Positions 1-46,484 of a DNA stretch of 64,000 nt are shown in pieces. The first letter of the stretch is position 1. Every line of letters starts with the position of its first letter. The position numbers and the translations under genes were made by a program. The stretch is from the sequence record NC_048779.1; one strand, given 5' to 3'. The notes under the pieces are model-generated. The model was given only the letters and a program-made list of their open reading frames with translations. It was not told where the DNA came from and did not search any database.

Positions 1-119
1 CCCGCCACTATAGTGATGGTAAGGAGGGTCTCTCCTTCATGACGCATGATCTTACCTCGGCGGTAACCATCGCAAACCTTAGGTAGGTCGTCAGTGTTAT
101 CAATCTTTTTAATTAACAC
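1..119 (-). CDS. Partial hypothetical protein (N-terminus only, runs off the window)
   Basis: On the minus strand AAGGAG-ttcctc-GTG at 119 opens an unbroken frame (MLIKKIDNTDDLPKVCDGYRRGK...) to the window edge; directly follows the stop of the 130-807 gene. Confidence 0.55.
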   Translation of the reverse strand, partial: MLIKKIDNTDDLPKVCDGYRRGKIMRHEGETLLTITIVA

Positions 120-129
120 GAGGAACTCC

Positions 130-807
130 TTAATTAGTGTGTAATGTTAAAGTGCGTGGAAACAGGCTCGTTAAACGATGAGCGTCTACTTTGAGATCGT
201 ACTTGAGTTGACCTAACTCGGACAAATGCGTGCGTAGGTCCCGCATGTTTTCCATAGGTATTACTTCTTCAATGGTTCGATAATGAACAGCCACCAGCCG
301 ACAAAGTGATTCAAACACCTCATTGAAGTTTTCTTCATTTAACTTCACCAATCCCACTTGATTAGTCAAACTTACACCCAACGTCCTTTTATCCGCGTCA
401 GGCAAGAAATCCAATTCATTCAACTTCACCGGAACAGAGTAGATGTGAATAAGTTCCAACCATTTCCAAAGGATCCAGTGGAAAGTTTTGATCTGTGCTT
501 GAAGTGCATGATCTTGAATAGCTTCTTTGCTGATGGAGAAACGACCTTCATCCCGATTGCCGTAATTTCCTCGTTCCCAAACCACAAGACTATACTCCCC
601 AATCTCTAACCCTTTGGTATCCAGATAAGAAACATAACCATCATTTGTCCGGTAATTAGCAATGGTAACTGCACGCGTCGTCCCAGTCTCGAGATTACTG
701 AGATCGGCGTTTAACGTTACGTTAGGTTTATGTTCGTATTCTGTGGTTTTGATGCGAATGTAATCCCCGAGTAACACCCGGGGTTTAGCGATAGTTATTT
801 TCATCAT
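130..807 (-). CDS. Hypothetical protein with N-terminal Ig-like beta-sandwich
   Basis: 225 aa; ATGA overlap with upstream gene; first ~95 aa beta-patterned, ending LDTKGLEIGEYSLVVW. Confidence 0.7.
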   Translation of the reverse strand: MMKITIAKPRVLLGDYIRIKTTEYEHKPNVTLNADLSNLETGTTRAVTIANYRTNDGYVSYLDTKGLEIGEYSLVVWERGNYGNRDEGRFSISKEAIQDHALQAQIKTFHWILWKWLELIHIYSVPVKLNELDFLPDADKRTLGVSLTNQVGLVKLNEENFNEVFESLCRLVAVHYRTIEEVIPMENMRDLRTHLSELGQLKYDLKVDAHRLTSLFPRTLTLHTN

Positions 808-1583
808 TTCACCTTTCTTGCAAAGCCAGTGATTGCACGGATACCGGCGGGCACATTACTCAAGGTATCGTTCGAACTCGCCAGCGCCATAAGGAACGTG
901 TAATGGTAGACCAAATCACTACCCAGTGGTTCTTCAATTACCGCCTTACGGAAATTAGGATGGATAACCCATTCCTTGACATTTGAATCCAGTAATGGTA
1001 GAAGACCCGCACCGATGCTCGTGTATCCACCGGACTCAAGTTCGATAGCGGTGATGTTATCGATGTCGTTAGCGGGACAATACGTCAAATCGTAGGACTT
1101 ACGAGCGACGTCCCAGTAGAGTTCAAAGAACCACGGACCGATTTCCCAAGCAAACAGTTTGTAACGTTCACTAGGGTGCTCAGTGGCTTTGTTAAGACGT
1201 GGTTCCATTAACGCCAGTGCACGCATAAAGGTCGCAAAGAAATCCATGCCGCGAGTTTTTAGATTCATGTCAGAAATTTCAGCACTCAATCGAGTGTCGA
1301 CTCGCATCCACGCTTCGTGGGATTCTGCGATTACTTCTTGATTACGATAGATCACCAATTTAGTGCGGTAATCAGTCACTTTAGGTAAAAGCCCTTCCAC
1401 AAGAGAATAAGAAACGTCATCGATGTTGTAACCGGAAGCTAGGACTTCATCGTTAATGTAAAGTTCTGCGTGGAGCTCATGACGGTTTTCCAACTTCCCT
1501 AGGTCACGCCAAGAAGGATGGATTGTGATCGTTTCGTCAAGATGGTGAATTTGTTTGTTTACTTCGATGTTAAATTTATTCAT
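804..1583 (-). CDS. Hypothetical protein with N-terminal FN3/Ig-like domain
   Basis: 259 aa; LVEGLLPKVTDYRTKLVIY resembles the FN3 L-x-G-L-x-P-x-T-x-Y strand motif. Confidence 0.7.
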   Translation of the reverse strand: MNKFNIEVNKQIHHLDETITIHPSWRDLGKLENRHELHAELYINDEVLASGYNIDDVSYSLVEGLLPKVTDYRTKLVIYRNQEVIAESHEAWMRVDTRLSAEISDMNLKTRGMDFFATFMRALALMEPRLNKATEHPSERYKLFAWEIGPWFFELYWDVARKSYDLTYCPANDIDNITAIELESGGYTSIGAGLLPLLDSNVKEWVIHPNFRKAVIEEPLGSDLVYHYTFLMALASSNDTLSNVPAGIRAITGFARKVK

Positions 1584-1589
1584 GTCGAT

Positions 1590-2102
1590 TTACTCGTTAT
1601 CTAAAAGCGGAGAAGTTAATGAAACGTAAAGTGTTTGCAGTGGTTCAGAGAAACGGTGTTTACCACCTAATACGTAGAGCTCACCAAGCGATAGGTTTTC
1701 CAGAATGTCGTCACCGGACTCGGCGATACGAGTTAGGGTATCTGGGTATCGGAACGCCAGAATATGGAGCAGATTCACCCATAGTGTTTCTAAAGTTATG
1801 TTAGGATCAGAAATATCAAGATTAATCGTGTTCATGTGATTACCCTGTCCTTCATCGCGTATGGTGACTAACGCTATCTCTTTATTGAGTTCTTTATGGA
1901 ACCAGTAATCCAACGTGATGTCAAACACACTGAATCGATAAGAAGCAGGGTCGAAACAATTAACGAGTTCTTTACAGAAACGGTTGTCTCGGTATTCTTG
2001 AGAAAGTTCTTTCATCGGGGGTTCTTGATCACGGAGACGCTTTAACGCCCCGTATAAAGTTAAGAACAAACCAACGGCTGGTCTCATATCAGGTTGTTGC
2101 AT
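1590..2102 (-). CDS. Hypothetical protein (local paralog family B)
   Basis: 170 aa in tightly packed operon; similar to 13368-14138 (EYRD; DEG..H; L...YP....IAE). Confidence 0.75.
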   Translation of the reverse strand: MQQPDMRPAVGLFLTLYGALKRLRDQEPPMKELSQEYRDNRFCKELVNCFDPASYRFSVFDITLDYWFHKELNKEIALVTIRDEGQGNHMNTINLDISDPNITLETLWVNLLHILAFRYPDTLTRIAESGDDILENLSLGELYVLGGKHRFSEPLQTLYVSLTSPLLDNE

Positions 2103-2126
2103 GGTATTAACCTTTAATTAAAAGTA

Positions 2127-2147
2127 GGGGTCCTATCAATGGACCCC
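2127..2147 (-). terminator. Hairpin, probable intrinsic terminator
   Basis: GGGGTCC-7nt-GGACCCC just downstream of the 2159-2455 stop. Confidence 0.55.
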
Positions 2148-2158
2148 CGGATTATATT

Positions 2159-2455
2159 TTACATGTGAGTCTTTCTAGAGGAATTAAGGAACTCCCAAAC
2201 AAGTTCGTTAAACCCCACTTCCCACTCCCGGTTTTCATCCCGCCTAAACGTTAAACCGTAGGCATCGTGTAACCAACGACTGTGAACGTCTTCGTAAGAA
2301 CGAAGCTGTTTAAGCATAGCCTCCCCAAAAGCCCCAGAGTAGTCTCTCATCAAAGTAAGATATTCTTCGTGTTTCGATGGTTTTGGATTTGAGGCGAACC
2401 ACCCGTCTAACCACCGTTTGAAACGCACCATATCAAAGTTAGGTTTACGAGACAT
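2159..2455 (-). CDS. Hypothetical protein; stand-alone copy of the C-terminal domain of the upstream gene
   Basis: 98 aa; shares NPK.S..Y and WL...Y.L.F......WE...N..V.E.L with the last ~100 aa of 2445-3533. Confidence 0.75.
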   Translation of the reverse strand: MSRKPNFDMVRFKRWLDGWFASNPKPSKHEEYLTLMRDYSGAFGEAMLKQLRSYEDVHSRWLHDAYGLTFRRDENREWEVGFNELVWEFLNSSRKTHM

Positions 2456-3533
2456 GTTCCAGTAACTCCTTCACATTCTGGTTTCCTTCGTATTCCCACT
2501 TGCCATCACGGAGATGGAAAGACAAATAGTAATCACGTTCTAACCATTCCGGTTCGATATCGAAACCTTTCAAGTGTTTAACGAAGTTAGAAGAAAACAA
2601 ATTTAAGAACAAGCGACGATCTATGACTTGATCAAACCCTTCTTCGAAACGACCAGCCAATTCACCCACAAAACTCATGTAATCTAAAATAGAAAACTTA
2701 GGATTAATGGAAGTTATCGTGTCTTCAATGAATTTATCCAAGTCTTCTTCTGTTTCAACTTCAGACGGAACTTGAGTAGTGACCACTCGTGTTTCTTTGA
2801 TGTGGTCATCGATATTTTTAAAGACAAAATCTTCCATCAAACGCACACGGGAGTTGAAAACTTTTGTGGTTTTATCAAAAGTAATGGGTGACATGAAATG
2901 CTCAAATAAAAGACCTGAGTCTATGATGTCTTTCAGGTCACCATTACCCTTAATACGTTTAAAGAGTTCTTGGAAGGTCGGTGCACTGTCTACTACTTCG
3001 ATTTCCTCTAAAGCTAGGTAGGTGGTCAACACCCAACGACCCACAACCGAACGAATCTCCAATTGTCTACCAGCGATGTAAGAATCAAATAACGTAACGT
3101 CCTCACCACCCCAGTAGTTTAACCCACCAGTGATAACCTCAAATCGATCTAGCGCGGTTTGAGCATTATTTTTCAAATGTTTTTCTAGATCAAAGTCTTC
3201 CGGATGATGGACTAGAAGGTCTTTAACTTCAGCTACTGATTCATCGTTGTCATCCAACACATGAACATTCACCTCGTAAGTATGACCCTTAGGAAGGTTG
3301 ATGCTACGGAGATTAATGGTGGTGATATCTGACTCCAGTAGTTCATGGTACACGGTGGTACCGCGATCCAATACCGGAAGTTCTTCTTCATGTTCTTCTA
3401 ACTCGTTGAGCGTAGTGGTAACATAAACCAACAGAGTTTTACCGAACAGACTCTCATCCGCATAAACGTAAAGTGTGTTGTTGATTGAAGCCGGGTGAAT
3501 TCGGTAGTTAAGTTCTGCGTGTAGTTTTTTCAT
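2445..3533 (-). CDS. Hypothetical protein, N-terminal Ig-like domain plus C-terminal domain shared with 2159-2455
   Basis: 362 aa; INLPKGHTYEVNVHV strand motif near residue 85. Confidence 0.75.
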   Translation of the reverse strand: MKKLHAELNYRIHPASINNTLYVYADESLFGKTLLVYVTTTLNELEEHEEELPVLDRGTTVYHELLESDITTINLRSINLPKGHTYEVNVHVLDDNDESVAEVKDLLVHHPEDFDLEKHLKNNAQTALDRFEVITGGLNYWGGEDVTLFDSYIAGRQLEIRSVVGRWVLTTYLALEEIEVVDSAPTFQELFKRIKGNGDLKDIIDSGLLFEHFMSPITFDKTTKVFNSRVRLMEDFVFKNIDDHIKETRVVTTQVPSEVETEEDLDKFIEDTITSINPKFSILDYMSFVGELAGRFEEGFDQVIDRRLFLNLFSSNFVKHLKGFDIEPEWLERDYYLSFHLRDGKWEYEGNQNVKELLEHVS

Positions 3534-3553
3534 TGGAATAATCCTTATAAGAG

Positions 3554-3573
3554 ATGGGGTGTTTCCACCCCGT
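3554..3573 (-). terminator. Hairpin with GAAA loop on the minus strand
   Basis: acggggtg-GAAA-caccccat between the stop at 3581 and the start at 3533. Confidence 0.55.
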
Positions 3574-3580
3574 GATGAGT

Positions 3581-5104
3581 TTAAATGATTTCGTTTACGG
3601 CGTTATAAATCCAGTCTTCGTTAAGGTTTCCAGAAGTACTGAGTCTGTCTATGATTTGATCCAAGAGATGAGTTTCAGGGAACTCGACCTCATTGGTTTT
3701 ACACAAAACAGTTGTATGTTTTGGGTCCATGCAAGTGTAAGGTCCTAAGTCTTGTTTAAGGTCCTCAGGAAGCTCGTGGAGAGGTTTCAATTCAACACCG
3801 CATAACTTATGCATGAAATCAATAAAAGCCGGGGAAGCGTCTTTACGTGACTTAAATGAGTAAGTCTTGCCTTCTCCAAGATAAACGATCACTTGATGAC
3901 GACGCGTCACCTTTAACTCTACGTTGTTGGATAACCCAAAGGCTTCAACAAAGTTAATAAGGTGACCTTCTACTAGGTTGCAATTATCCGTGGTCGCAGA
4001 CATAAGGGCGGTCTCATTAGACACGAACTCCCGGGTTTGCTTAGCTAATTTACCTAAGACTTTGAAGTCTAACGGTTCTTTGGAGTGGATAAATATATCA
4101 CGGGTCAGTTGCTCACCAGACATGTCTTTAATTCGAATAGTGAGAACGTGACAAGGACTGAATCCGTACTCCGGGCGATTGTTTCGAACCGCTCTCAGGT
4201 TTTCCCAGCGAACATGTCCGGTGGTTTCCGGAATATCCACATTGTCCAGCATTTCGTTTAATGCCTTCACCACACTTGGTGCGAACCTTTCTGGGTCGTT
4301 AAAGTCAATAGGGGTGTACTTGCCATTATCGAATTCGGTTACCCCGACCATATTGTTTGCTCCCACGGCCAAATTATAGTTTAAATAAGACAAAGATAAC
4401 AAGAGTTCCTTGTCCTTATTTAAATCAATTGGGTTTTGTGAGATCCCGGGGATTAGTTTATCCACATGTCCCCAAGCAACCTGAACCTTTTTATATTTGT
4501 CAAAGAAAGGTATTAACCCACGCTCCACTAAAGTGTTTCGTAAATCCAGTGCGCGTTTTAAAACACCGCTGGTTGAGTTAATGAAATTCTTTCTTTCATT
4601 ACTCGTGCTACCATACGCGTTAGACACTAACTCTAAGACTCGGCGATTCAGTTCGTTTTCCAGTAGTGGGTTAGGTTTTAATGCGGACTTCATGATATTA
4701 AAGTCATCAAATCCAACGAAGGTATAAACCCATTCTAAACTATAAAGTCCCATTTTAGCTACACCCCAACCCAGATCTAAGGTAAGGCGTTCTGTTACTG
4801 TGACGTTTTGCTTTAACTCTGGGTCAACCTTATCCAGTAGTGCTTCCCACCCCTCCTTATCTTTAGGGAGATCGAAATCACCCCAAGTATCATTATTACG
4901 GACTAATCGATACACTGGGTCTGGTTTAACTTCATCACGTCCTCCGTAACCAAAGTTATTTACTCGGTACTCTTCAGGAAGTAGGGCGTCCGTGATAACA
5001 CCTTGTAGCATTTCTCGGTTACCCGTGCGGATTTGGAGTTGACGTTCTTGCATTTCTATGGATGTCGCTAAAACGTCCAGTGCGGCCAAAATACTCTTAT
5101 TCAT
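3581..5104 (-). CDS. Hypothetical protein
   Basis: 507 aa ORF with AAGGA RBS; no motif recognised. Confidence 0.8.
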   Translation of the reverse strand: MNKSILAALDVLATSIEMQERQLQIRTGNREMLQGVITDALLPEEYRVNNFGYGGRDEVKPDPVYRLVRNNDTWGDFDLPKDKEGWEALLDKVDPELKQNVTVTERLTLDLGWGVAKMGLYSLEWVYTFVGFDDFNIMKSALKPNPLLENELNRRVLELVSNAYGSTSNERKNFINSTSGVLKRALDLRNTLVERGLIPFFDKYKKVQVAWGHVDKLIPGISQNPIDLNKDKELLLSLSYLNYNLAVGANNMVGVTEFDNGKYTPIDFNDPERFAPSVVKALNEMLDNVDIPETTGHVRWENLRAVRNNRPEYGFSPCHVLTIRIKDMSGEQLTRDIFIHSKEPLDFKVLGKLAKQTREFVSNETALMSATTDNCNLVEGHLINFVEAFGLSNNVELKVTRRHQVIVYLGEGKTYSFKSRKDASPAFIDFMHKLCGVELKPLHELPEDLKQDLGPYTCMDPKHTTVLCKTNEVEFPETHLLDQIIDRLSTSGNLNEDWIYNAVNEII

Positions 5105-5113
5105 TTTATTTCC

Positions 5114-5869
5114 TTATTTCTCATGACGAGTTACAGTTAATAGGGTTTCACGTAAGGTTTCTTTGTATCGCTCATCGTCCGCCAGACGTAACAGCGATTT
5201 AGTGCCGGAAGGTTTAGATAAATCAATGAGTGCTTTCATCACCGATGGTTTAGCGACAGCATTTAATATTTTGTCACGGGTTACTTGCCAGCCCATTAGA
5301 CGGAAGTTAACTTCGTGTTGCGCACCATTCAAGTCCGTACAGTACATGGTTAATAAAGGCATCCCGTTATTACGGGTGTTTCGTACAAAGAACAGGTACT
5401 CCAATTCTGGGGTGCTGAACTCTAAAAACTTGGTACCGACTCGACTCTCTCTCATCGAAGGATTTTCTTTATTGAAATCCATTCTGGCACGGAACGCCAT
5501 GTGAGTGATGATATCTAGGTTACGTTTCAACGCTTTTAAGTTCTCCCCTATTGAAATGATGTTTTTCGATGCAAGGACACTCTCTGGGACAACGTCGTAT
5601 TCGAAGCCCTTAAGTTCGATAGGGTTACCACCTTTATGAACTAAGATTTTCAACGTGAAGTGTGTAAGGTCGAAGCGTTCTAAGTCAATACCCACTCGGT
5701 GTTCTGAACGATCGCTTTTAATCCAGTTGCGATGGACTTCTTCGTTGTTTATGAGTAGGGAAACTTCTTTACCCTCACAGTCTATAACCGTAAAGGTGAT
5801 ACCGAACTTACCTTTCTCTGGAACGTAGCGACCTGAAGTGATAACGTTTTTAATGTGTTTATTGGACAT
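5114..5869 (-). CDS. Hypothetical protein, N-terminal beta-sandwich plus family B domain; first gene behind a putative early promoter
   Basis: 251 aa; AAGGA RBS; TDLNGAQHEV resembles DEDGKYHDV of 13368-14138. Confidence 0.75.
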   Translation of the reverse strand: MSNKHIKNVITSGRYVPEKGKFGITFTVIDCEGKEVSLLINNEEVHRNWIKSDRSEHRVGIDLERFDLTHFTLKILVHKGGNPIELKGFEYDVVPESVLASKNIISIGENLKALKRNLDIITHMAFRARMDFNKENPSMRESRVGTKFLEFSTPELEYLFFVRNTRNNGMPLLTMYCTDLNGAQHEVNFRLMGWQVTRDKILNAVAKPSVMKALIDLSKPSGTKSLLRLADDERYKETLRETLLTVTRHEK

Positions 5870-5916
5870 GATGTTTATCCTTTTAAGTTAATGAAATAAA
5901 TAGCGTATGGATTCAT

Positions 5917-5934
5917 ACACCATAGTAATATAGA
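5917..5934 (-). promoter_or_regulatory. Putative early promoter TCTATAT-N6-RGTGT (copy 1)
   Basis: Minus strand TCTATAT-TACTAT-GGTGT, 48 bp upstream of the start at 5869; contains TATATTAC, the published phiKZ early promoter core. Confidence 0.7.
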
Positions 5935-5958
5935 TCTGTTAAATTTTACAGAATGCGA

Positions 5959-5994
5959 TATATCCCCTCACCCCAAATGGGGTGAGGGGATATA
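5959..5994. terminator. Perfect 16-bp inverted repeat, intrinsic terminator
   Basis: tatatcccctcacccc-aaat-ggggtgaggggatata right after the stop of 6000-6290. Confidence 0.75.
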
Positions 5995-5999
5995 GTAGT

Positions 6000-6290
6000 T
6001 TACTTGGTTACTCGAACCTTAAACTCACCTTGGTGTTCATAACCCGCTTCTGTATTTTCAGTAAGCTGATATGCAAGGGTAACAGTGCCGGGTTTAATGT
6101 CGTCGGTAGGGATCTCAAAACAGAACCCACCATTTGGTTCCGTGTAAAGAACTTCGTTCAACACCTTACCATTAAGTGACAACACTATTTGATGCGGTTG
6201 ACCCAAACCATCGAATTTACCTTTAAGCTGGATCGGATTACCACGCTTCACTTTATCAGTGGCTACGGCGTGATTTAGAATCGCTGACAT
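6000..6290 (-). CDS. Stand-alone Ig-like domain protein
   Basis: 96 aa; PIQLKGK...LNGKVLNEVLYTEPNGGFCFEI aligns by eye with Ig repeats of 14249-17932 (PITLSGK...NNGVKVSDITSDEQGVFNVDI). Confidence 0.7.
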   Translation of the reverse strand: MSAILNHAVATDKVKRGNPIQLKGKFDGLGQPHQIVLSLNGKVLNEVLYTEPNGGFCFEIPTDDIKPGTVTLAYQLTENTEAGYEHQGEFKVRVTK

Positions 6291-6318
6291 ATTAGTCTCC
6301 TGTTAATAAGCGAATTAA

Positions 6319-6336
6319 ATGGGGACGGGTCCCCAT
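6319..6336. terminator. Short GC-rich hairpin
   Basis: atgggga-cggg-tccccat after the stop of 6343-7698. Confidence 0.45.
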
Positions 6337-6342
6337 AACATC

Positions 6343-7698
6343 TTAGTGGATCGTAGGTGCGTTCAACAAATCTTCTTCAGTGATCACCGCTTGGTTGTCT
6401 AGGTCCGCAGGTTTCACGTTCGTGTATGGTGCGAAGTGTTCTGTTTCTACATCGTACAGGTGTTGTTGGAATGCATCAAAGAACGTACCAGAGAAAGTCT
6501 GACAACGTTCAGCGATTACTTGTTCATCGTGCGGTAAGATAAACGATTCACCTTGCTCCACCGTATGCAGCATCATATTGGAGATATCCAGTTTAACTGG
6601 ACACTGTGTACGCACGCACTCATCTTCAATAGTTTGTAGGAACCAGCTGATCTCTTCGTCGATCAATTTACGACCTTCTTCACATACATCGTCAAAGCCC
6701 CAAACACGCACTGTGTGTTTAGCAATTGGGTGGTGGATCTTACCGATGTAAAGTTGATGGATTTCTTTATTCAACACTTCGTAACCAGTATTGTAGTTCA
6801 ACAGGTTACCAATGACGATATTCATTTCATCCACGTGTGACTCTAGGGTTGCAATCATTTCTCGATCTTGTTCATGTTCCCACTGATCAAGATTAACTGG
6901 AGTACGATTGATAACAAAATTTTCTTCATTGCGTACTGGTTGTAAATCCAGTCCCAATTTAATTTTATGGTCTTCGATGTTAAGGGAGAACCATAAATCG
7001 TGTGTCTTGACTGTAGGGGTCTTTTCTCCCCACTGGTTTACAAGCTCGCCAATTTTGCCAAGTTGGGTAGCAATGCGTTTGGCATTACGATTAACAACTG
7101 TATCTACGTGCTGAACATCGTGTGCGGTCATATCACCAAAGTGTTCGTCGATCCATTCATCTGACGGTTCGTAAACCGTGATGTTAGGGATGCGGTTAAT
7201 AACCATTGGGTAGTACTTGTTACGATGCTTACGTTCTTCTGAATTAACTTGTTCCATGCTCAAAGTGGCGATGAAACCAATCAGTTCTTTCACGTTGCGA
7301 TCGTTGGCGAAACTGTCAACTTCCTTGCTCAATTTATTAAGCTCACGAAGTTGTTCCAGAATGCTTTCGATCATGACGTTGTACACCAAGTACTCAAGGT
7401 GTTCTCGATCACCTAACCATTCTTTCAGTTGCTTAGCACTGTACGGCATATCAGGGTCATCAGACTCTAGGTATTCCGTAAGTTCAACCGGAAGATTAAA
7501 ATCAATACGAATACGGGTCATTGGTAGGTATTCGTGATTAGAGATTGTCACATTCATGTCTTCTGGTGCAAGACCTGTGTGTAGCAGGGAAGGTGTTCCG
7601 TTAGTTTCAACAGGCATGATGAAAGTAAGGTTGTTTAGTCCTTCAGCAATGTACGCAAACATCTTCCAAAGGTCGTGGTTAGGTTTAGACTTAGACAT
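6343..7698 (-). CDS. Hypothetical protein, divergent from the helicase
   Basis: 451 aa ORF with AAGGA RBS; no motif recognised. Confidence 0.8.
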   Translation of the reverse strand: MSKSKPNHDLWKMFAYIAEGLNNLTFIMPVETNGTPSLLHTGLAPEDMNVTISNHEYLPMTRIRIDFNLPVELTEYLESDDPDMPYSAKQLKEWLGDREHLEYLVYNVMIESILEQLRELNKLSKEVDSFANDRNVKELIGFIATLSMEQVNSEERKHRNKYYPMVINRIPNITVYEPSDEWIDEHFGDMTAHDVQHVDTVVNRNAKRIATQLGKIGELVNQWGEKTPTVKTHDLWFSLNIEDHKIKLGLDLQPVRNEENFVINRTPVNLDQWEHEQDREMIATLESHVDEMNIVIGNLLNYNTGYEVLNKEIHQLYIGKIHHPIAKHTVRVWGFDDVCEEGRKLIDEEISWFLQTIEDECVRTQCPVKLDISNMMLHTVEQGESFILPHDEQVIAERCQTFSGTFFDAFQQHLYDVETEHFAPYTNVKPADLDNQAVITEEDLLNAPTIH

Positions 7699-7746
7699 GT
7701 CAGTTTCCTTTTTCTTTTTTTCAATTAAACTTTAATAGGGGTTATT

Positions 7747-9828
7747 ATGTTTAGTATGTTATTCGGACCCAGTATAGAGGTGGATGACCAACGTGCCATC
7801 ATCTCTGGGTTATCTTGGCGTCCGTTTGAACAAGACGTTAATAGACTTTACGGGACCACCACCATCACTAAGTATATGCTTAGTCGGGTTAATTCTCGCA
7901 AGTTTGAAGTTAAATCATTTTTCCTTTTGGAGCTCAATCACCTAATAACTAAACTACTTCAGTTAAAAAGTACTCGAGTAAATCGCCGTGACTTAGTGAA
8001 GGTACAAGAGCTTATCCAAACTGAAACTTGGGTGCAGAGTACATTAGTACCGCAACCTTCTTTGTTCGATATGAACAAGCTAAAGCGAACGGTTAAACTT
8101 AAGCCATTAGACCCACAGCTACGCTTCTTGGAAACTTACACATCTCGTAAAGCTTCTTATCACCTAAAAGGATTGTTATTAGATGGTAAAGCTGGGAGTG
8201 GTAAGACCGCCCTATCACTGATGTGGTCTGAATCGCTTCCTAAGGGTAAGACTGTTGGGTTCGTTCCTTTGAACGTTATTGAAGAAGTGTGGGCTAATCA
8301 CATGACCAATAACATCAAACACGAGGTGTGGGTTAAACCCCCAAAGTTTTGGCATTCCAAGATGGATCGTTCGCCTCAGAAAGATGACGAATACTACTTT
8401 ATTCACTATGAGTTCATGTTAGATCCTTTGTGTGAAAAATACATGCGAATGATTCATTCCTTTAACGCAGGGAATCCGGCGTTTAAGATGATCGTCGATG
8501 AGTGTCATAACTTTAACGATCCGAGCTCGAAGCGCACCAAGAAGCTTATTGAGTACAACGAAGTTTATAGTTTCACTGACGCACTACCTATGTCCGGCAC
8601 CCCGATCAAAGGAGTCGGTAAAGAAGCCTACACGATCTTCTGTTTGATCGATAGCTTCTTCAAGGGTAATGTGAGAAAAGCGTTCCTAGACGGTTATGGT
8701 CGCTCTCGTGATAAACTCAACGAACTACTGGCTCACCGCATTGGTGCTGAGAAATATACGATCGCGGTACTGGATGGAATGGGAGACGCGCCAATCCCAG
8801 AACGTGTGAAGGTTAAAGTTCCGTTTGCTGAACACTTCACTCTGGATTCCATCCGTAACCAAATGCAAGTTTACATCCAAGATCGTTATAAGTATTATTC
8901 CAATAACATGGAACAGTACGTAAGTTACTTCAATGACATAATCAGTGGTTACCGTGCACATTGTGTTAAACGTAATGATCAGAAAGCGTTGAGTGAACTA
9001 GACGAATACCTCCGTATCGTGAACAAGTTCCGTAAAGATGGGTACAATAACTTCACCGATTCTGATTTATCTAAACGTGCTAAAGAAATCGAATTAGATA
9101 TAGAAGAATGGATGCGTCCAACGGAACGTAAACATTTCCGTAATGCTAAGTCGATCGTCAAGTACGTTGGGTTGAAGATTCAAGGGGAAGCGTTAGGTAA
9201 CGTTTTAGGCAAAGCTCGTATCGAAGCCGTTAAAGCGTTGGTTGAGTACGCGGACTTACCAAGTTACATCGACCACGTAGAGAAAAAGACCCTTATCTTT
9301 ACAGATCACGTTGATGTGGTTTATGAGTGTGATGATCACCTAACTAAGCAAGGTTACGATACCATCTTCGTTTACGGTAATAATACAAGTGAGCGTGATA
9401 AACTCGTCGCTCAGTTTGGTGAGTCAGAAACCAAGAACCCGTTGATCACGACATTCAAATCACTGTCTACTGGTTATCCTTTGTTAATGGCTAACCAAGT
9501 GTTGTGTATGAATGCTCCTTGGCGTGATTACACGTTAACTCAAACGATCGCTAGGGTGCATCGTCAGGGGCAAACTGCTCCTACCTTTGCATACATGTTT
9601 GAATTAGACACAAACGGTCGAGAGAACGTTACAGGGCGTAATTTGGATATCATGCAATGGAGTCGGGAACAAGTTGCTCAGATCATGTCAGTGCAGCACG
9701 GCGAAGACGTAACCTTAGTGGGGGTAGCTGGCACTGAAGATCTCTTCGATGCTGATCACACACTATGGGATGAGTCGGTGACACCACCTAAAGTGGTTAC
9801 TCACGTGAGTCCGATGGGATTGTTTTAA
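7747..9828 (+). CDS. SF2 (SNF2-like) DEAD/DEAH-box helicase
   Basis: Motif I GKAGSGKT, motif II DECH, motif III SGTP, motif VI QTIARVHRQGQ. Confidence 0.9.
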   Translation: MFSMLFGPSIEVDDQRAIISGLSWRPFEQDVNRLYGTTTITKYMLSRVNSRKFEVKSFFLLELNHLITKLLQLKSTRVNRRDLVKVQELIQTETWVQSTLVPQPSLFDMNKLKRTVKLKPLDPQLRFLETYTSRKASYHLKGLLLDGKAGSGKTALSLMWSESLPKGKTVGFVPLNVIEEVWANHMTNNIKHEVWVKPPKFWHSKMDRSPQKDDEYYFIHYEFMLDPLCEKYMRMIHSFNAGNPAFKMIVDECHNFNDPSSKRTKKLIEYNEVYSFTDALPMSGTPIKGVGKEAYTIFCLIDSFFKGNVRKAFLDGYGRSRDKLNELLAHRIGAEKYTIAVLDGMGDAPIPERVKVKVPFAEHFTLDSIRNQMQVYIQDRYKYYSNNMEQYVSYFNDIISGYRAHCVKRNDQKALSELDEYLRIVNKFRKDGYNNFTDSDLSKRAKEIELDIEEWMRPTERKHFRNAKSIVKYVGLKIQGEALGNVLGKARIEAVKALVEYADLPSYIDHVEKKTLIFTDHVDVVYECDDHLTKQGYDTIFVYGNNTSERDKLVAQFGESETKNPLITTFKSLSTGYPLLMANQVLCMNAPWRDYTLTQTIARVHRQGQTAPTFAYMFELDTNGRENVTGRNLDIMQWSREQVAQIMSVQHGEDVTLVGVAGTEDLFDADHTLWDESVTPPKVVTHVSPMGLF

Positions 9829-9891: not shown

Positions 9892-10383
9892 TTAGCGTTT
9901 ACGAGCATAACGGTTTGACACTTCCATGATTTTGTTTAACAGACTTGTGGTGAGTTCACGAATATTAGGTGTTTCAATGCGAACATCTTTTTCGATTTGC
10001 GAACTAATAACTACTGATTCCATGGACAGTTCAACATCAGTATAGAAAAAGGTTCCCTTGATACAGAACTCTTCACGGTAGACGTTGATTAGTGTTGATA
10101 GGCACGTTCTAGGGGAACGACTAAGATTGATCAGACCTTTAGGGTCGATGATAAATAACCCCAACAAAATCTTAGTTAGTTGTTGGGCTCCCCAAATCTC
10201 ACTGCCGTTAAAACCATCAATAAAACTTTTAGGGTAAGTGCGACGGGTTAGATTGGTTTCTTTACCGTCGTCTAGCTTGATGACCAAAGTGCCGTACTCT
10301 CCATCGAAAGATGATTCGATTCGAGAAGACGTCTTAGTGTTAAAGGTAAAGCTACGACCTTGGATGATTTGCTTGTCAGTCAT
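9892..10383 (-). CDS. Hypothetical protein (family B)
   Basis: 163 aa; DPKGLINLSRSPRTCLSTL resembles NPKLFDLISRRSYKFTLATL of the adjacent gene. Confidence 0.75.
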   Translation of the reverse strand: MTDKQIIQGRSFTFNTKTSSRIESSFDGEYGTLVIKLDDGKETNLTRRTYPKSFIDGFNGSEIWGAQQLTKILLGLFIIDPKGLINLSRSPRTCLSTLINVYREEFCIKGTFFYTDVELSMESVVISSQIEKDVRIETPNIRELTTSLLNKIMEVSNRYARKR

Positions 10384-10402
10384 GGATGACTCCTTAATGA
10401 AT

Positions 10403-10873
10403 TTAGATAAAAGTTCGAGATTGAATTAGATTGGGTTTCCAATCATCGATGTTTAAAGTGAGTTCGTGATTACCTGCTACTTTCAAAGACAACTTACGAC
10501 CTTGTCTTGAACTTAAATAAGCAGTTCGATTACGATAACGAACAGACCAGATTTTTCCCAATGGATAAAAGTGGTCCAGTAATTGTTTTAATGTAGCTAA
10601 GGTGAATTTGTAAGACCGTCGACTAATGAGGTCAAACAACTTAGGGTTGGTTAAATACTCGAACAGTACACTGACTATGATGTCTTCATGCACCGGTCTA
10701 AATATTGTAAAAGCGGTATATTTGGTACGTTGGTTCCCCTTACCGGAAGAACCAACGTAACCATACCACTTACCATCCCGTTTATTTACCACACACCAGT
10801 ATTGTTGGTGTTGGTGTAAGATCGCCGTCGGGACGTCTATGTCCTCCGGGAGATCCGAGATGCAAGTATCCAT
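10403..10873 (-). CDS. Hypothetical protein (family B)
   Basis: 156 aa; paralogous segment with 9892-10383. Confidence 0.75.
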   Translation of the reverse strand: MDTCISDLPEDIDVPTAILHQHQQYWCVVNKRDGKWYGYVGSSGKGNQRTKYTAFTIFRPVHEDIIVSVLFEYLTNPKLFDLISRRSYKFTLATLKQLLDHFYPLGKIWSVRYRNRTAYLSSRQGRKLSLKVAGNHELTLNIDDWKPNLIQSRTFI

Positions 10874-10874
10874 A

Positions 10875-11399
10875 CTAGTTTACCAAATCAGTCAACGTCA
10901 GTCTGAATTGAGCGTTATGGGTCCAAGGGTGAAGGATAGACCCACTTAACCCCAGTTTGCTTTCTTCAGGCAGATGTGTGTTGAGGAACTCGGTGAAACG
11001 TTCTTGAAGCTCTTCTCCAGTAAAGTACTTACCGTCTTGTTCTTTTGCCATTCGATATGACTCGACACAAATATGACGGAAGTAGTCTTCAGGGAGCACG
11101 GACTTCAAGTTATGATCAACTGGGAACTCTCGATATTTTAAATCCATCTTGAGACCTAGTTTGGTTTTTAGCGTAGAAGTAAATCCCTTAGGCAACACTT
11201 CCATTTGAATGCAGTTGGTTACGGTTAACGTACCCGGCTTTGCACCCAAGCGAGAGACTTCACGATGTAACTGACGACGAGCGTCATTAAGCCTTGCGGA
11301 GATACCACGTAAACAAGCAGACTCACTGCTCTTACGTAGAGAGACAACTGAATTGGCAAAGTCCTCTGCCATTTTTATAAAAATTATTTCCTGAGACAT
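10875..11399 (-). CDS. Hypothetical protein
   Basis: 174 aa ORF abutting the next gene; AAGG RBS. Confidence 0.75.
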   Translation of the reverse strand: MSQEIIFIKMAEDFANSVVSLRKSSESACLRGISARLNDARRQLHREVSRLGAKPGTLTVTNCIQMEVLPKGFTSTLKTKLGLKMDLKYREFPVDHNLKSVLPEDYFRHICVESYRMAKEQDGKYFTGEELQERFTEFLNTHLPEESKLGLSGSILHPWTHNAQFRLTLTDLVN

Positions 11400-11419
11400 G
11401 GTTATAAAACCTTAATATA

Positions 11420-11872
11420 TTAGCTTGCTTTAGGTAGCAAGACACTGGTGAATACGCGACCATAGTAACACGGGTGCTGTAGTACCCAGCGACCTTCGAA
11501 TTTCTCTGGTCTGAAAACTAATTGATCTTCAGTGAACGAAGAACCCAGTAGACGGTTGATGTCTTCCAACTTATGGTTAGGACGAACAGCGACGTAATGA
11601 TGCATAGCGCGTTCATCGTAGTACAACCCTTCTTCGTCGTCTTTACGTCCACCTTGTTTATGACATAGGTCATTTAAAATAGGTGTGATGCTTACACGTT
11701 TCCAAGATAGTGGAATACGCTTACCATTATTAAACCCCTCTGCGGTAAAACGATCTGGGTAATCTGGGTTTTGACGGATGGTGTCGGGATCGACATCGAA
11801 TTCTCCATCCAGTGAAATACCGTGTTGTGCGATTACCAAACGTTTAATCATTTCTGCTAATGACGCTTTCAT
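11420..11872 (-). CDS. Stand-alone copy of the N-terminal domain of the large Ig protein (probable virion protein family)
   Basis: Start moved to MKASL (ATG 11872, AAGG upstream); GLYYDERAMHHYVAVRPNHKLEDINRLLGSSF matches GLYYVEDIAELYLVVKDSMTIEEIQRLLGYKF in 14249-17932. Confidence 0.7.
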   Translation of the reverse strand: MKASLAEMIKRLVIAQHGISLDGEFDVDPDTIRQNPDYPDRFTAEGFNNGKRIPLSWKRVSITPILNDLCHKQGGRKDDEEGLYYDERAMHHYVAVRPNHKLEDINRLLGSSFTEDQLVFRPEKFEGRWVLQHPCYYGRVFTSVLLPKAS

Positions 11873-14161: not shown

Positions 14162-14179
14162 ACACTCTTATGATATAGA
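14162..14179 (-). promoter_or_regulatory. Putative early promoter (copy 2)
   Basis: Minus strand TCTATAT-CATAAG-AGTGT, 24 bp upstream of the start at 14138. Confidence 0.6.
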
Positions 14180-14248: not shown

Positions 14249-17200
14249 TTAGCTCCAAGTTACAGTGTACTCTTTACGGTCGTCTCCGCCTAGGAACGCA
14301 TAAATCATGCTCTTAGCTTCGGTTTCCGTAAACTCATACACCACCACACCTTCTAGATCTGAAGTACGAGCCGGCCAAGTCATGTTACCATCGTACATCA
14401 CTACTTGTTCTTGATCCATTGGCTGACCATTCTGGTCAACAGTAGTGATAGTGAAGGTTACTGTCTCGCCTGCTGCGACGTTCAGATTACCGTGTTGGAC
14501 ATCAATGCCTGTGTAAACTGGAGCCGGGTCTGACCAAGTGATCGTGTGAGATGTGCCTGTTACACCACCACCGCCGCTGAAGTTGTACGTTACCGCACCT
14601 TCATCTTCAGAGCTGAAGCTGAACGTAAGTTCGCCGTTTCCGTCAGTGAAGCTAACTGGGAATGGTGCACCACCGGTATTCCAAGTAACCGCTTGGTTAG
14701 GCATCGGATCACCGTTCTGGTCTTTAGTCACGATCTTAACAGGAACCGTTTCACCGGTTGTACCGGTCGTCTCACCTGAAACTACTTCAATAGTACTGTA
14801 GACTGCCGGAGGCGCTGCCCAAGTCAATGTAATCGGTAAATCAACACCATCCGCACTTACAGTTAACGTAGCGTTGGTTTCGCTGTCTTCTGTAATAGTG
14901 AATGTGTTACCGTTTTGAGTTGGTGTCGCCGCACCAGTGTAAGTGAACGTTGGTTCTTTACTTACTACCGGGTTACCGTCGCTGTTCAACAACTCTACTT
15001 TGACTGTGATCTCTTGATCAGCAACAACGTCGTTGTCCACTGGAGCTACTTGGTTAATAGCTGTCACTAGGTTAGGGTCTTTCCAAGTCACGTTAAGGTC
15101 TTGGGTTACCGAACCTGTAACGACAGTGTAAACCTTCGCACCCGGGTTAGATTCAGTATGGGTGAAACTAAAGCTACCGTTTGCCAGTGTTGCTTGGGAA
15201 TCCAACAATGTGTCACCGTCTTTAAGTTCGACGGTTACGCCTTCCATTACCCCACCTTTCTGGTCTTTCAAAGTACCAGTGATAGTGATATTCTGGTCAA
15301 CGTTCTCGACCTTATCTGCTGTATCCATTTCAAAGGTCGTTGGGACGCGAGTTTCGAATACTGTTAGGTTAACCGTTACCGCTAATGTATCTACTTCGAC
15401 CGCATCTGCAATCAACTCGTAATCGCCTTCAGCTACCGCAGTGCCTACGTAAGCAAACGTACCGTCAGCGTTACACAGAACGTCGTTAGTTTCACCAGCA
15501 TCATTCGTAATAGTTACGTGTGTGGTTGACCAATCTTTCGTGTAGTTAACTTCGATTTGACCTGTTACCGTGTAATCTTCACCCGGCTCAACGGTTGTCG
15601 GAACCACGGCGAGGTTGTTGATTACTGGTTCTGATTTAACCGTCCAGTTAACCGTGATTGGTGTTGTTAAACTACCTGCTTTCACATTGATCGTTTGAGA
15701 CAACTCACCGTTATCGCGATACACTGCATCGAAACTGAATCCACTTTCTGTGGTCGTTTGTGTTTCGGTATGACCATCTGGGTATTCCAGAGTTACGGTT
15801 TCACCCTGCATTGGGTCGTCGTATTGGTCAACTACGGTACCTTCTACTTTTAAAGTAGTGTCAGTAAACAAATCCACTGTAGTTGGGGACGCCATCTGAA
15901 TTGCAGTCAGGATATGGTTCTTAGCCCATGTTACGGCGATAGACGCGCCAATATCGTTTTCACCAGCAAAAGAGTAAAGGTGTTCCGATTCATCAGTTTC
16001 AGTGATGTCTACATTGAACACACCTTGTTCGTCAGAAGTAATGTCCGAGACTTTAACACCGTTGTTCTTAAATACCAGAGGTACATTAGCGACGACTGTG
16101 TCGGTTTGATCTACTGTTTTACCAGAGAGCGTGATTGGTTGGTCTGTTACCCCTTCGGTTGGGTTACTTGGGTCTAACACCACTTCGTCAAAACGACGGA
16201 CTAGGTTCCAAGTAAAATCAATCGGTTTTACTAACGACTGACATTTCAGGGTAATGGATTCTACTACTGTGTTCTCTGCATCCACTGGAGAGTCCAAAGT
16301 AGCCACGTACTCGTCACCGTCAACGACGTAGGCTTTAGGCGCACCGTTTTCACGGTACCATGTACCACTGGTACCCACCATAGGGCGTTCTACGGTGTCG
16401 TAGATTTTGAATCGTAGTTCGGCAGGTTTAAATAATTCACCTTCATCGTTGATGATTTCAAAACGCCCCGGAATTTGTTCTGAAGGTTGCACAGTAATCG
16501 TAATTACGTTAGACTCTTCTTCACCCAAACGAAGTTTTACAGCGTAGGTCACTGGATCGGAAGTATCGTTTTCCACATCGTAAATGTGTTCTAGTACACC
16601 TTCTGGGGAAGCAAACAACTGAGTAGTTACTTGATCGTCAACAAGGAAATCCACAGGAACATCCGTCATAGTCAGATCGTCTGACGATAACAAAGAACTT
16701 GTTAGTGTCACTAACTCGTCCGCACCCACTTCCGTTTTATCCGCTGACAGAGGACCGATGATTAAATCATCCACGCTAAGTGCTGCTAGAATTTGGTGTG
16801 TTTGAGAGAACATGTTTAAGTCTTGTGGTAAGCCACAAACGAACTTCACCACCATCTCACCAGCAACCACTGGTGTGTGTTCAACATCAAACGTCCCGTT
16901 AGTGCCGAATGGGATTTCTACCGGACCTTCACCTTGTTCTTCAATGATGATCTTCGGTTCAAGGAGTTCGTCACCCCAAGGTGTGCGACCAAAGTCACCA
17001 CTCACGCTGCCCGCGATGCGGAACGGTTCACCCACACGGGTTTTGTCAACGTTAACCGTGTATTCGTCGATATCCCAATGCTCATCGACATAAGACACCG
17101 AATAAACATCAGTGAGTTTATCGCGATCCAAACCAACGGATACCAATAATTGCAGATCGTCAGTAACTTCCCCGGATAAACCTAAGTCAATATCAAAAGT

Positions 17201-17932
17201 ATTGTCTTCACCCAAAGTACCTTCGATTACTTCACCTTGTCGGTAAGAACCCACGAACTCTGCTTTGAAAGCTTTATCGATTTCTGCTGAGTACACCGGT
17301 TCACCGCCGACGCGTTCAATAGTAATGTACTGTGCAGGTGCATGCGGGTTAGCTGGAAGTAGATTTCCGTCTACTGATGTATCACTCACCGCAATACCTG
17401 TGCCGTCGGTCATCGTGCCGTCTGGGTTCGGTGTGACTTTACGTAAGGGCATGGTGCCGGTCACGACTGGTGAAGATACACGTAGATGACTCAAGCGAAC
17501 TTCTAACTCACCCGGTTCAAATTTGTAACCCAGTAAGCGTTGGATTTCTTCGATAGTCATGGAGTCCTTCACGACTAGGTAAAGTTCGGCGATGTCTTCT
17601 ACGTAATAAAGTCCCGGAATAACGATGTTTTCAAACACTTCCATGTTTGGAACTTTGATGCGTTCTTTTTGATTCAACACCGGTACGGTATCACCCGGTG
17701 ACCAACGTTGAGTGAATTCAAACCCATCACGACCAGTCAATTTGATTTCGCCAATGAAAGCACCGGAACCAGCGTAGGTTTCTTTGATTGTTTTAAACGT
17801 CACTTCGTCATCGGTCAAACCTTCAAAGCGAGATTTCGCTAAGAGGATGTCCTCAGGGTTGCCTTTAGATTCCGCATAACTGATTCGAATCAATGCGGTT
17901 TTATCCAAAAGGATTTGTCTAATATGTTGCAT
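14249..17932 (-). CDS. Large poly-Ig (Big/invasin-like) protein, probable virion decoration or adhesin
   Basis: Start moved to MQHIRQ (ATG 17932; AAGGA RBS; a hairpin lies between it and the upstream ATG). N-terminal domain shared with 18003-19190 and 11420-11872, followed by ~95-aa repeats such as TITGTLKDQ.G..M.GVTV and D.NG.P. Confidence 0.85.
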   Translation of the reverse strand: MQHIRQILLDKTALIRISYAESKGNPEDILLAKSRFEGLTDDEVTFKTIKETYAGSGAFIGEIKLTGRDGFEFTQRWSPGDTVPVLNQKERIKVPNMEVFENIVIPGLYYVEDIAELYLVVKDSMTIEEIQRLLGYKFEPGELEVRLSHLRVSSPVVTGTMPLRKVTPNPDGTMTDGTGIAVSDTSVDGNLLPANPHAPAQYITIERVGGEPVYSAEIDKAFKAEFVGSYRQGEVIEGTLGEDNTFDIDLGLSGEVTDDLQLLVSVGLDRDKLTDVYSVSYVDEHWDIDEYTVNVDKTRVGEPFRIAGSVSGDFGRTPWGDELLEPKIIIEEQGEGPVEIPFGTNGTFDVEHTPVVAGEMVVKFVCGLPQDLNMFSQTHQILAALSVDDLIIGPLSADKTEVGADELVTLTSSLLSSDDLTMTDVPVDFLVDDQVTTQLFASPEGVLEHIYDVENDTSDPVTYAVKLRLGEEESNVITITVQPSEQIPGRFEIINDEGELFKPAELRFKIYDTVERPMVGTSGTWYRENGAPKAYVVDGDEYVATLDSPVDAENTVVESITLKCQSLVKPIDFTWNLVRRFDEVVLDPSNPTEGVTDQPITLSGKTVDQTDTVVANVPLVFKNNGVKVSDITSDEQGVFNVDITETDESEHLYSFAGENDIGASIAVTWAKNHILTAIQMASPTTVDLFTDTTLKVEGTVVDQYDDPMQGETVTLEYPDGHTETQTTTESGFSFDAVYRDNGELSQTINVKAGSLTTPITVNWTVKSEPVINNLAVVPTTVEPGEDYTVTGQIEVNYTKDWSTTHVTITNDAGETNDVLCNADGTFAYVGTAVAEGDYELIADAVEVDTLAVTVNLTVFETRVPTTFEMDTADKVENVDQNITITGTLKDQKGGVMEGVTVELKDGDTLLDSQATLANGSFSFTHTESNPGAKVYTVVTGSVTQDLNVTWKDPNLVTAINQVAPVDNDVVADQEITVKVELLNSDGNPVVSKEPTFTYTGAATPTQNGNTFTITEDSETNATLTVSADGVDLPITLTWAAPPAVYSTIEVVSGETTGTTGETVPVKIVTKDQNGDPMPNQAVTWNTGGAPFPVSFTDGNGELTFSFSSEDEGAVTYNFSGGGGVTGTSHTITWSDPAPVYTGIDVQHGNLNVAAGETVTFTITTVDQNGQPMDQEQVVMYDGNMTWPARTSDLEGVVVYEFTETEAKSMIYAFLGGDDRKEYTVTWS
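14252..17332 (-). repeat. Array of about 10-11 diverged Ig-like repeats (protein level)
   Basis: Repeats end in a (I/L/V)-T-(V/W)-T-W-type strand (IDFTW, IAVTW, ITVNW, LNVTW, ITLTW, HTITW, YTVTW); the last two units are clearly duplicated (P..VY..I.V..G.....GETV...I.T.DQNG.PM). Confidence 0.75.
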
Positions 17933-17959
17933 TCTAATATCCTTAGTACGCGTCAAAAA

Positions 17960-17983
17960 ATAAGTGGGGACACCCCCACTTAT
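17960..17983 (-). terminator. Intrinsic terminator
   Basis: ataagtgggg-4nt-ccccacttat followed by a T-run on the minus strand. Confidence 0.7.
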
Positions 17984-18002
17984 AAGATGACTCATTTTAA
18001 GT

Positions 18003-22436: not shown

Positions 22437-22454
22437 ACACCCAAGTAATATAGA
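22437..22454 (-). promoter_or_regulatory. Putative early promoter (copy 3)
   Basis: Minus strand TCTATAT-TACTTG-GGTGT, 43 bp upstream of the groEL start. Confidence 0.7.
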
Positions 22455-32455: not shown

Positions 32456-32473
32456 ACACTCAGATAATATAGA
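32456..32473 (-). promoter_or_regulatory. Putative early promoter (copy 4)
   Basis: Minus strand TCTATAT-TATCTG-AGTGT, 66 bp upstream of the start at 32390. Confidence 0.6.
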
Positions 32474-40836: not shown

Positions 40837-40853
40837 ACGGTCCTCGTTAGTTA

Positions 40854-40871
40854 AAGGGGGCGAACCCCCTT
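40854..40871 (-). terminator. Hairpin with UUCG loop
   Basis: Minus strand aaggggg-TTCG-ccccctt after the stop at 40875. Confidence 0.65.
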
Positions 40872-40874
40872 ACA

Positions 40875-44144: not shown

Positions 44145-44216
44145 ATTCCGTCCTTTAATAAGTTCCGGGTTATTACCCTAGAAGTTAATGAATCATAAAA
44201 TTCGTTTCACTGTAAT

Positions 44217-44250
44217 ATAATCCAGAGGTCCCTACGGACCTCTGGATTAT
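44217..44250. terminator. 15-bp perfect inverted repeat terminator
   Basis: ataatccagaggtcc-ctac-ggacctctggattat. Confidence 0.75.
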
Positions 44251-44264
44251 TAACTAAGGAAGTA

Positions 44265-46406: not shown

Positions 46407-46484
46407 AACAAAAGGCCTTATGTTAGTGTCAAATCGCACAAGTAACGTAACGATTCTATAGAATTCACCAAGGAGATTTGTATA

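Follow-up and report, generated by a model that had tools for sequence, protein, structure and literature searches.

The window, the whole 64,000-nucleotide (nt) stretch of DNA analysed here, is the start of the genome record of Vibrio phage USC-1 (NC_048779.1), a 238-kb jumbo phage (Aphroditevirus, Gorgonvirinae) belonging to the Chimalliviridae, the nucleus-forming phages; over bases 1-8000 the two are identical. Near its beginning, the minus strand carries an island of ten genes (~6.2 kb, from g6000 to p11) that is specific to Vibrionaceae-infecting Gorgonvirinae and lies between two backbone genes. There are strong indications that this island grew by ancient serial duplication of a single gene with two domains, an immunoglobulin (Ig)/fibronectin type III (FN3)-like sandwich and a second, alpha/beta domain, here called X. 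Predicted structures strongly indicate that g5114, g2445 and g804 are old whole-gene paralogs of this architecture, and g130 probably keeps both domains of the ancestral gene as well. Transcription signals are likewise strongly indicative of a terminator that closes the unit formed by g6343 and g6000, of a promoter of the class found before the chimallin gene that drives g5114 to p11, and of small conserved hairpins after g3581 and g2159 that split this operon into three sub-blocks. All genes from g6343 to g130 are annotated as hypothetical in GenBank.

The island came to attention through an original prediction that five genes (g6000, g5114, g2445, g804 and g130) share an N-terminal Ig/FN3-like module fused to interchangeable C-terminal domains. 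The five open reading frames exist exactly as predicted; each lies on the minus strand and coincides with a GenBank coding sequence of USC-1. The accompanying claim that none has a signal peptide is also borne out: no hydrophobic N-terminus or transmembrane-like stretch is present in the block, and in the five proteins the highest 19-residue Kyte-Doolittle mean stays below 1.2. The relationship between the parts of these proteins turned out to be of a different kind.

Domain anatomy and paralogy

The kinship of the two-domain genes emerges from structure models compared with the viral models of BFVD. In the AlphaFold2 model of g804 (predicted local distance difference test score, pLDDT, 70.6; one of five models good), residues 1-95 are all-beta and are followed by the X domain, predicted as a long helix (105-132), a four-strand sheet (140-183) and further helices (187-237). 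A Foldseek search of BFVD with this model returned its own ortholog first and V9LZJ5 of phage VP4B second (13% identity, E 6.5e-8, 275 columns); an exact look-up identified the latter as VP4B gp198, the ortholog of g5114. The model of g2445 is poor (pLDDT 48.9). Its residues 4-109 are beta-rich, and the order of its secondary structure mirrors that of g804, with a beta region, a long helix, four strands and helices. The only BFVD match of g2445 at E<=1e-3 is the g804 ortholog of phage 2 TSL-2019 (E 1e-5, 252 columns), and hhalign aligns g2445 with g804 collinearly (1-168 to 1-163). Two independent searches of viral models each picked an operon neighbour as best non-orthologous match over its full length, for which there is hardly an explanation other than common ancestry of the whole two-domain protein.

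What follows the N-terminal module was predicted to differ from gene to gene. Instead, g5114, g2445 and g804 match over ~250 columns, so that the second domain is common to all three. Within each paralog the N and C parts have diverged at equal rates, which fits a single unit rather than shuffled modules, and the interchangeable C-terminal domains thus give way to three whole-length paralogs. Some modularity is nonetheless real: the Ig-like domain occurs alone in g6000, the extra C-terminal domain of g2445 (Z) occurs alone in g2159, and the C-part of g130 has a relative without an Ig-like domain in g1590. The match between g2159 and the last ~60 residues of g2445 reaches an hhalign probability of 81-91% (P ~1e-6 to 1e-5, z 9.7 against shuffles), with an hmmsearch E of 2e-5 and a PHROG cross-hit. 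Residues 85-166 of g1590 align with residues 51-121 of the g130 C-domain (hhalign P 0.0011, z 6.3, 0 of 40 shuffles). A helix-strands-helices pattern in the sequences of g130 and g1590 is an impression only.

Merged MAFFT profiles of the N- or C-domains of the three paralogs did not recruit g130, g1590, p10 or p11. A kinship between the C-terminus of p10 and p11, suggested by an 11-nt overlap like that of g2445 and g2159, was not significant (z 2.0).

For the N-terminal domain, the evidence differs from gene to gene. Profile comparison makes a strong case that g6000 is a free bacterial Ig-like domain, distantly related to Big repeats. A profile built from six g6000 orthologs gave 121 matches at E<=1e-3 in 1.84 billion representative proteins, mostly giant multi-repeat proteins with up to 22 matched stretches each and multi-repeat totals down to E 4.5e-23; according to Pfam, the matched repeats are Big_3_5 (PF16640), Big_13 (PF19077), Big_9 or Big_1 domains of the E-set clan. 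Like these tandem repeats, g6000 is ~90 amino acids (aa) long, and the profile based on it can also be aligned with the g5114 and g130 N-domains. Unlike them, it is a single, free, phage-encoded domain of 96 aa, lacks a signal peptide and shares 24-30% identity per domain with the bacterial repeats. No Pfam hit of the five N-domain genes exceeds the gathering score (the best is PF22416, E 0.064, for g6000). With no curated threshold passed, bacterial Ig-like membership therefore applies at the superfamily level only.

Structure prediction followed by Foldseek, proposed with the original prediction as a check, placed the N-part of g804 among Ig/FN3 folds. Every top match in the PDB is of this class (E 2e-3 to 3e-2; target-normalised TM-score up to 0.69), including the FN3-like module of CbhA, Fc-gamma receptor, IL-12 receptor and SiiE, and the model gives moderate support for an Ig/FN3-like sandwich. 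For g2445, with its poor model, the one significant structural match in BFVD is the g804 ortholog.

The N-domains were also compared with an enriched Big profile, made of g6000 and 61 repeat domains, against a null of column shuffles (score ~9.5 +/- 2, n=60). The N-terminus of g5114 scored 23.6 (null 9.3 +/- 1.7; 0 of 60 shuffles) and aligned collinearly (1-77 to 1-81); together with the BFVD model of its VP4B ortholog, the best non-orthologous match of the g804 model, this makes an Ig-like fold moderately to well supported. The N-domain of g130 scored 18.4 (0 of 60) in an end-to-end alignment; this collinear profile match weakly suggests a beta-sandwich. The g804 and g2445 N-domains came out near background (13.7 and 11.4, reached by two and seven of the 60 shuffles, respectively), and all C-domains at background. 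A beta-sandwich in g2445 has weak to moderate support. The common N-terminal module of the original prediction hence recurs strongly in g6000 and with intermediate support in g5114 and g804, and more faintly in g2445 and g130. Four of the proteins carry it at the N-terminus, and the fifth, g6000, consists of nothing else.

The domain pieces were compared with one another by hhalign, a further check put forward with the original prediction. Among ~180 pairs, four of the seven best are N-to-N pairs, of which ten were possible (enrichment estimate ~6e-4). The five tyrosine-corner-like strings that had drawn attention to these genes share one block in pairwise hhalign alignments. They were thought to end the domain; in the g804 model, however, the string forms the penultimate long strand.

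These comparisons leave some room for the view that the sandwich of g5114, g2445 and g804 shares no ancestry with the Big-like domain of g6000, and that g130 may lack an Ig-like fold altogether. No two of the nine block proteins match by BLASTP, the g804 and g2445 N-domains barely rise above their shuffles, and beta-rich segments are prone to weak collinear profile hits. Against such partial analogy stand the end-to-end alignments of the g5114 and g130 N-domains, both of which outscore 60 of 60 shuffles, the excess of N-to-N pairs among the top piece comparisons, and the common alignment block that contains the flagged strand motifs. This view is considered quite improbable. A Chou-Fasman style propensity profile was uninformative on the block proteins.

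Conservation and transcription of the island

The eleven genes from g6343 to p11 occur in identical order in all eight Gorgonvirinae genomes compared (USC-1, Aphrodite1, PDCC-1, 2 TSL-2019, phiKT1019, VP4B, pTD1 and phiKT1028). Between genera, most block genes share 20-35% identity, with g6343 highest at 53-66%. The ratio of nonsynonymous to synonymous substitution rates (dN/dS, Nei-Gojobori) is 0.02-0.32 for each gene with enough substitutions for an estimate; it is highest in g6000 (0.18-0.30 against PDCC-1 and 2 TSL-2019). Given these low ratios and the synteny, the block genes are therefore real and constrained. No presence/absence variation or turnover of island genes was seen among the eight genomes, which come from phages of different Vibrionaceae hosts.

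Between USC-1 and Aphrodite1, g130 has a synonymous rate (dS) of 0.80 with dN/dS 0.09, compared with dS 0-0.1 in neighbouring genes. Positive selection on g130 was rejected in favour of a recombination patch. The amino-acid changes lie mostly in its C-terminal domain.

Outside the subfamily the block ends abruptly. Homologs of g6343 are present in Klebsiella phage Miami and its relatives. In Miami the order is helicase, g6343 homolog, terminator and then at once the convergent pair that flanks p11 in Gorgonvirinae (gp216/gp217), namely a homolog of a 211-aa USC-1 protein and a virion structural protein. The block from g6000 to p11 is absent from this equivalent backbone site in Miami, and is therefore a lineage-specific island. 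The original prediction of an accessory region is thus correct at the level of the Chimalliviridae as a family; within Gorgonvirinae, in contrast, the island is core, being syntenic and under purifying selection in every genome compared. No homolog of g5114, g2445, g6000 or g804 was found outside Gorgonvirinae in phage genomes, IMG/VR and a search of 5.8 billion proteins. The block proteins have no functional hits in PADLOC (defence and anti-defence), Pfam, NCBIfam or PHROGs, and a literature search found no study of the island genes.

The transcription signals of the island are concentrated in the 130-bp gap between g6000 and g5114, where a GC-rich hairpin, a promoter-like block and a leader hairpin occur in all eight phages. 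The first hairpin directly follows the g6000 stop codon, and a T-run comes after it in most lineages, Tidunavirus and phiKT1019 among them, but not in USC-1. The conserved block ends in TCTATATTAC-N4-GTGT, which is the only copy at each locus. Just downstream, the leader hairpin keeps its pairing while its sequence changes in Tidunavirus and phiKT1019, and it may be a 5'-leader structure of an early transcript. Upstream of the promoter lies g6000, itself preceded by a small hairpin following g6343, in a transcription unit separate from the other four N-domain genes. A strong terminator closes the operon after p11.

The motif belongs to a wider set. In the form TCTATAT-N6-RGTGT it has five exact sites in the window (0.5 expected), always intergenic and on the coding strand: 5917-5934, 14162-14179, 22437-22454, 32456-32473 and 56536-56553, all on the minus strand. 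Across the USC-1 genome there are 15 sites, each of them intergenic, minus-strand and 49-98 nt upstream of a same-strand start codon; their consensus is about TTTnCArrTCTATATwAyCTwrGTGT. One, at 137757, stands before the gene annotated as nuclear shell protein (chimallin), and another, at 121212, before an RNA polymerase beta subunit gene; none of the 15 precedes a gene for the major head, the tail sheath, an internal head protein or the terminase. By itself, the TATATTAC octamer shows no enrichment in the window (three sites, 2.3 expected) and becomes significant only with the flanking TC and N4-GTG. A scan with sigma-70 and terminator consensus patterns gave no overall enrichment.

The core of the USC-1 motif is the same as in the promoter motifs given for phiKZ (TATATTAC) and 201phi2-1 (..TATATTAC-N4-GTG). 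According to a review, such motifs stand upstream of early operons, and in every case with mapped transcripts they proved to be early promoters of the virion RNA polymerase. Core motif, spacing and position upstream of operons are identical to those of phiKZ-like early promoters, and the USC-1 motif stands before the chimallin and RNA polymerase subunit genes; it differs in being predicted from sequence and in an extended consensus (TTTnCAnnTCTATAT..) that is lineage-specific. Because g5114 shares the motif with the chimallin gene and the RNA polymerase subunit gene, g5114 to p11 probably form an early operon. The early region anticipated by the original prediction would thus include the four genes behind the motif, while g6000, the fifth, belongs to a different unit. 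The motif also precedes a GroEL-like gene and a ligase-containing operon, and the set resembles an early regulon of Gorgonvirinae.

Possible roles of the island proteins

Phage Ig-like domains and early-gene islands of jumbo phages are both familiar. An early-operon paralog family that joins an N-terminal Ig-like domain to a private second domain is new, and its significance hinges on experiments. In the favoured explanation, the island proteins would be made in the cytoplasm within minutes of infection and would not be parts of the virion. They would act as a set of binders that touch other proteins through the surface of the Ig-like domain and have a second conserved interface in the X domain. 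Most likely they would be aimed at conserved proteins of the host (Vibrionaceae) that the phage commandeers early, and the individual paralogs would be specialised either for different partners or for one another. The binder reading is proposed because of probable early expression, the confinement of the genes to phages of a single host family, strong purifying selection and the tendency of Ig-like domains to bind proteins. The island's anatomy, evolution and timing as described are considered quite likely, and the favoured explanation as a whole is given about an even chance. That the proteins bind host targets is regarded as doubtful, and so, a little more, is the specific proposal that a chimallin-class early promoter deploys cytoplasmic Ig-fold binders whose paralogs dock on different host or phage-nucleus partners through the Ig-like domain.

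Several points weigh against this explanation. Neither g804 nor g2445 has an N-domain whose sequence is significantly similar to g6000, so that a common origin of the five N-domains is unproven. Confidence in the g2445 model is low, and one in five g804 models is good. The membership of g130 comes from weak profile scores, with its C-domain linked to g1590 only and not to the X domain. Neither fold nor sequence matches assign a function to X: PDB hits are limited to the N-domain, Foldseek finds no PDB match to the g804 C-part, PDB sequences searched with the profiles of four families yielded no hit below E 0.1, and no polar residues are conserved between the paralogs as marks of a catalytic site. 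The early class of g5114 to p11 is read from the promoter motif. Strict conservation speaks against a fast arms race but identifies no target. Finally, Ig-like domains in phages are classically features of the virion surface, which favours a structural role.

Such a role would make the Ig-like domains surface decoration or adhesion modules, as in Hoc and pb10, with the X domain as capsid or tail anchor and the several paralogs filling non-equivalent sites on a very large particle. Phage Ig-like and FN3 domains are reportedly found overwhelmingly on structural proteins, and it is for this known bias that the possibility keeps some weight, although it is judged unlikely. Hoc, tail-fibre and capsid proteins occur among the BFVD matches of the g804 N-domain, and a gene for a virion structural protein adjoins the island on the other strand in relatives. 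A structural role fits g6000 best, which is outside the early operon and could be of another temporal class. For g5114, in contrast, the preceding motif is the one common to the chimallin and RNA polymerase subunit genes, with no copy before any recognisable head or tail gene. The island is also distant from the baseplate/tail-fibre module (35-55 kb) and from the internal-head-protein paralog array (85-93 kb), its N-domains are no more variable than the rest of each protein, and the particle backbone of Miami-like relatives manages without it.

Known virion proteins offer two further comparisons. The decoration modules of phages (T4 Hoc, T5 pb10, tail-fibre and tail-tube appendages) have the same fold class and a comparable two-part architecture of Ig-like and anchor domain. 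In the island, however, the Ig-like domain is N-terminal rather than appended C-terminally or internally to a structural protein, and the genes form a paralog array behind an early-type promoter, outside the structural modules. Arrays of internal head (inner body) proteins in phiKZ-like phages are similarly tandem, highly diverged paralogs kept in synteny. USC-1 has its own annotated array of this kind; the island proteins are smaller, without similarity to that array, and follow an early promoter motif.

Another possibility, close to the original prediction, is an adaptor-plus-effector or anti-defence array. Its proteins would join one and the same Ig-like docking tag to diverse effectors, which would each counter a separate host system or bring cargo to the phage nucleus. 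The early-type promoter, the lineage-specific island, the missing export signal and the true domain combinatorics (Ig-like alone, Z alone, a C-domain with and without Ig-like) are all in keeping with it. Effector diversity is nevertheless slight, since three of the four fused genes share their second domain. The constancy of the island in eight genomes and its low dN/dS also argue against it, as do the lack of matches to defence or anti-defence models and of catalytic-looking polar residues kept between paralogs. Variable anti-defence and accessory islands differ from this one, whose order is identical in all eight genomes, whose dN/dS is at most 0.32 and which is absent only in the distant Miami group. 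A nucleus-targeting role would moreover be expected across all Chimalliviridae, yet Miami is without the island. An array of this kind seems improbable.

If the favoured explanation of early cytoplasmic binders is true, the island would represent an intracellular, non-structural use of the Ig fold by phages and a new two-domain family (Ig-like and X) without relatives outside Gorgonvirinae. Phage Ig-like domains have been treated as ornaments of the virion surface, a view that a conserved early cytoplasmic set of Ig-fold proteins would widen. A defined and testable module of host interaction would also become available in nucleus-forming Vibrio phages, themselves candidates for phage therapy in aquaculture. 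Of use in its own right, the apparent 15-site early regulon, with the chimallin gene as internal control, can guide the annotation of genes of unknown function in the subfamily.

Gene layout and neighbouring families

The genes and signals of the block are listed below in transcription order. Packing is tight, with overlaps of 4 nt between g130 and g804 and of 11 nt between g2159 and g2445. Downstream of g130, relatives encode p10 (205 aa) and then p11 (109 aa). The arbitrary start of the USC-1 record cuts p10, which is unannotated in this phage; the remainder of p10 and p11 are at the far end of the record. No family match to g3581 was found in Pfam, NCBIfam or PADLOC. In Aphrodite1 (NC_042100), the ortholog of g5114, at 8061-8816 of the locus compared, is intact and its protein 100% identical, yet it is missing from the annotation.

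Table 1. Genes and predicted transcription signals from g6343 to the start of p10, in transcription order; positions are those of the window.
Feature	Position	Strand	Description
g6343 (451 aa)	6343..7698	-	Backbone gene; marks the upstream edge of the island, outside it
Small GC hairpin between g6343 and g6000	6321..6334	-	Predicted at -9 to -15 kcal/mol; in 7/7 phages compared
g6000 (96 aa)	6000..6290	-	Stand-alone bacterial Ig-like (Big/E-set) domain by profile search; upstream of the terminator and promoter pair
Hairpin/terminator (16 bp) directly after the g6000 stop	5959..5994	-	Stem of 16-17 bp in 8/8 phages
Early (virion RNA polymerase type) promoter motif	5917..5952	-	AT-rich upstream block and TCTATATTAC-N4-GTGT; conserved in 8/8 phages
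Hairpin in presumed 5' leader of the g5114 transcript	5900..5923	-	Pairing kept despite sequence change; putative role
g5114 (251 aa)	5114..5869	-	Ig-like N-domain ~1-90 (nt 5600-5869) and alpha/beta X domain; first gene of the probable early operon
g3581 (507 aa)	3581..5104	-	Co-operonic; unknown fold; syntenic in all relatives
Small GC hairpin between g3581 and g2445	3556..3571	-	In 7/7 phages; read as internal attenuator or stabiliser
g2445 (362 aa)	2445..3533	-	Putative Ig-like N-domain ~1-110, X domain ~116-205
g2445 remainder			Linker (poorly predicted), then C-terminal Z domain ~300-362
g2159 (98 aa)	2159..2455	-	Stand-alone copy of the g2445 Z domain
GC hairpin with T-rich tail between g2159 and g1590	2126..2148	-	Conserved, with similar loop, in 7/7 phages
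g1590 (170 aa)	1590..2102	-	Without Ig-like domain; C-terminal half related to the g130 C-part
g804 (259 aa)	804..1583	-	Predicted Ig/FN3-like N-domain 1-95 (nt 1299-1583) and X domain (AlphaFold2, Foldseek)
g130 (225 aa)	130..807	-	Probable Ig-like N-domain ~1-95 and C-domain related to g1590
p10 start (first ~39 codons; GTG start 117-119)	1..119	-	Translation matches the N-termini of p10 orthologs (205 aa)

Neighbouring genes encode an SNF2/DarB-like helicase, a GroEL-like chaperonin, thymidine kinase, RNase H, an NAD-dependent ligase and an SbcC-like protein. The helicase is encoded by a divergent gene on the plus strand at 7747-9828 and shows a length polymorphism of ~230 aa within the subfamily, with 693 aa in USC-1, Aphrodite1 and pTD1 and ~921 aa in PDCC-1, 2 TSL-2019, VP4B and phiKT1028.

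A clearer case of a shared N-terminal module with variable C-termini than the flagged array is found at 38626-46520, where three consecutive minus-strand tail-fibre/minor-tail genes (736, 1089 and 751 aa) have a common N-terminus of ~250 aa (phrog_2163) and differ C-terminally. At 14249-19190 (minus strand), neighbouring proteins of 1248 and 395 aa share their first ~80 residues, with cross-hits to phrog_27694 and phrog_33038. Four small minus-strand genes of similar size (~150-165 aa) at 9892-11872, also present in relatives, possibly constitute a further paralog array.

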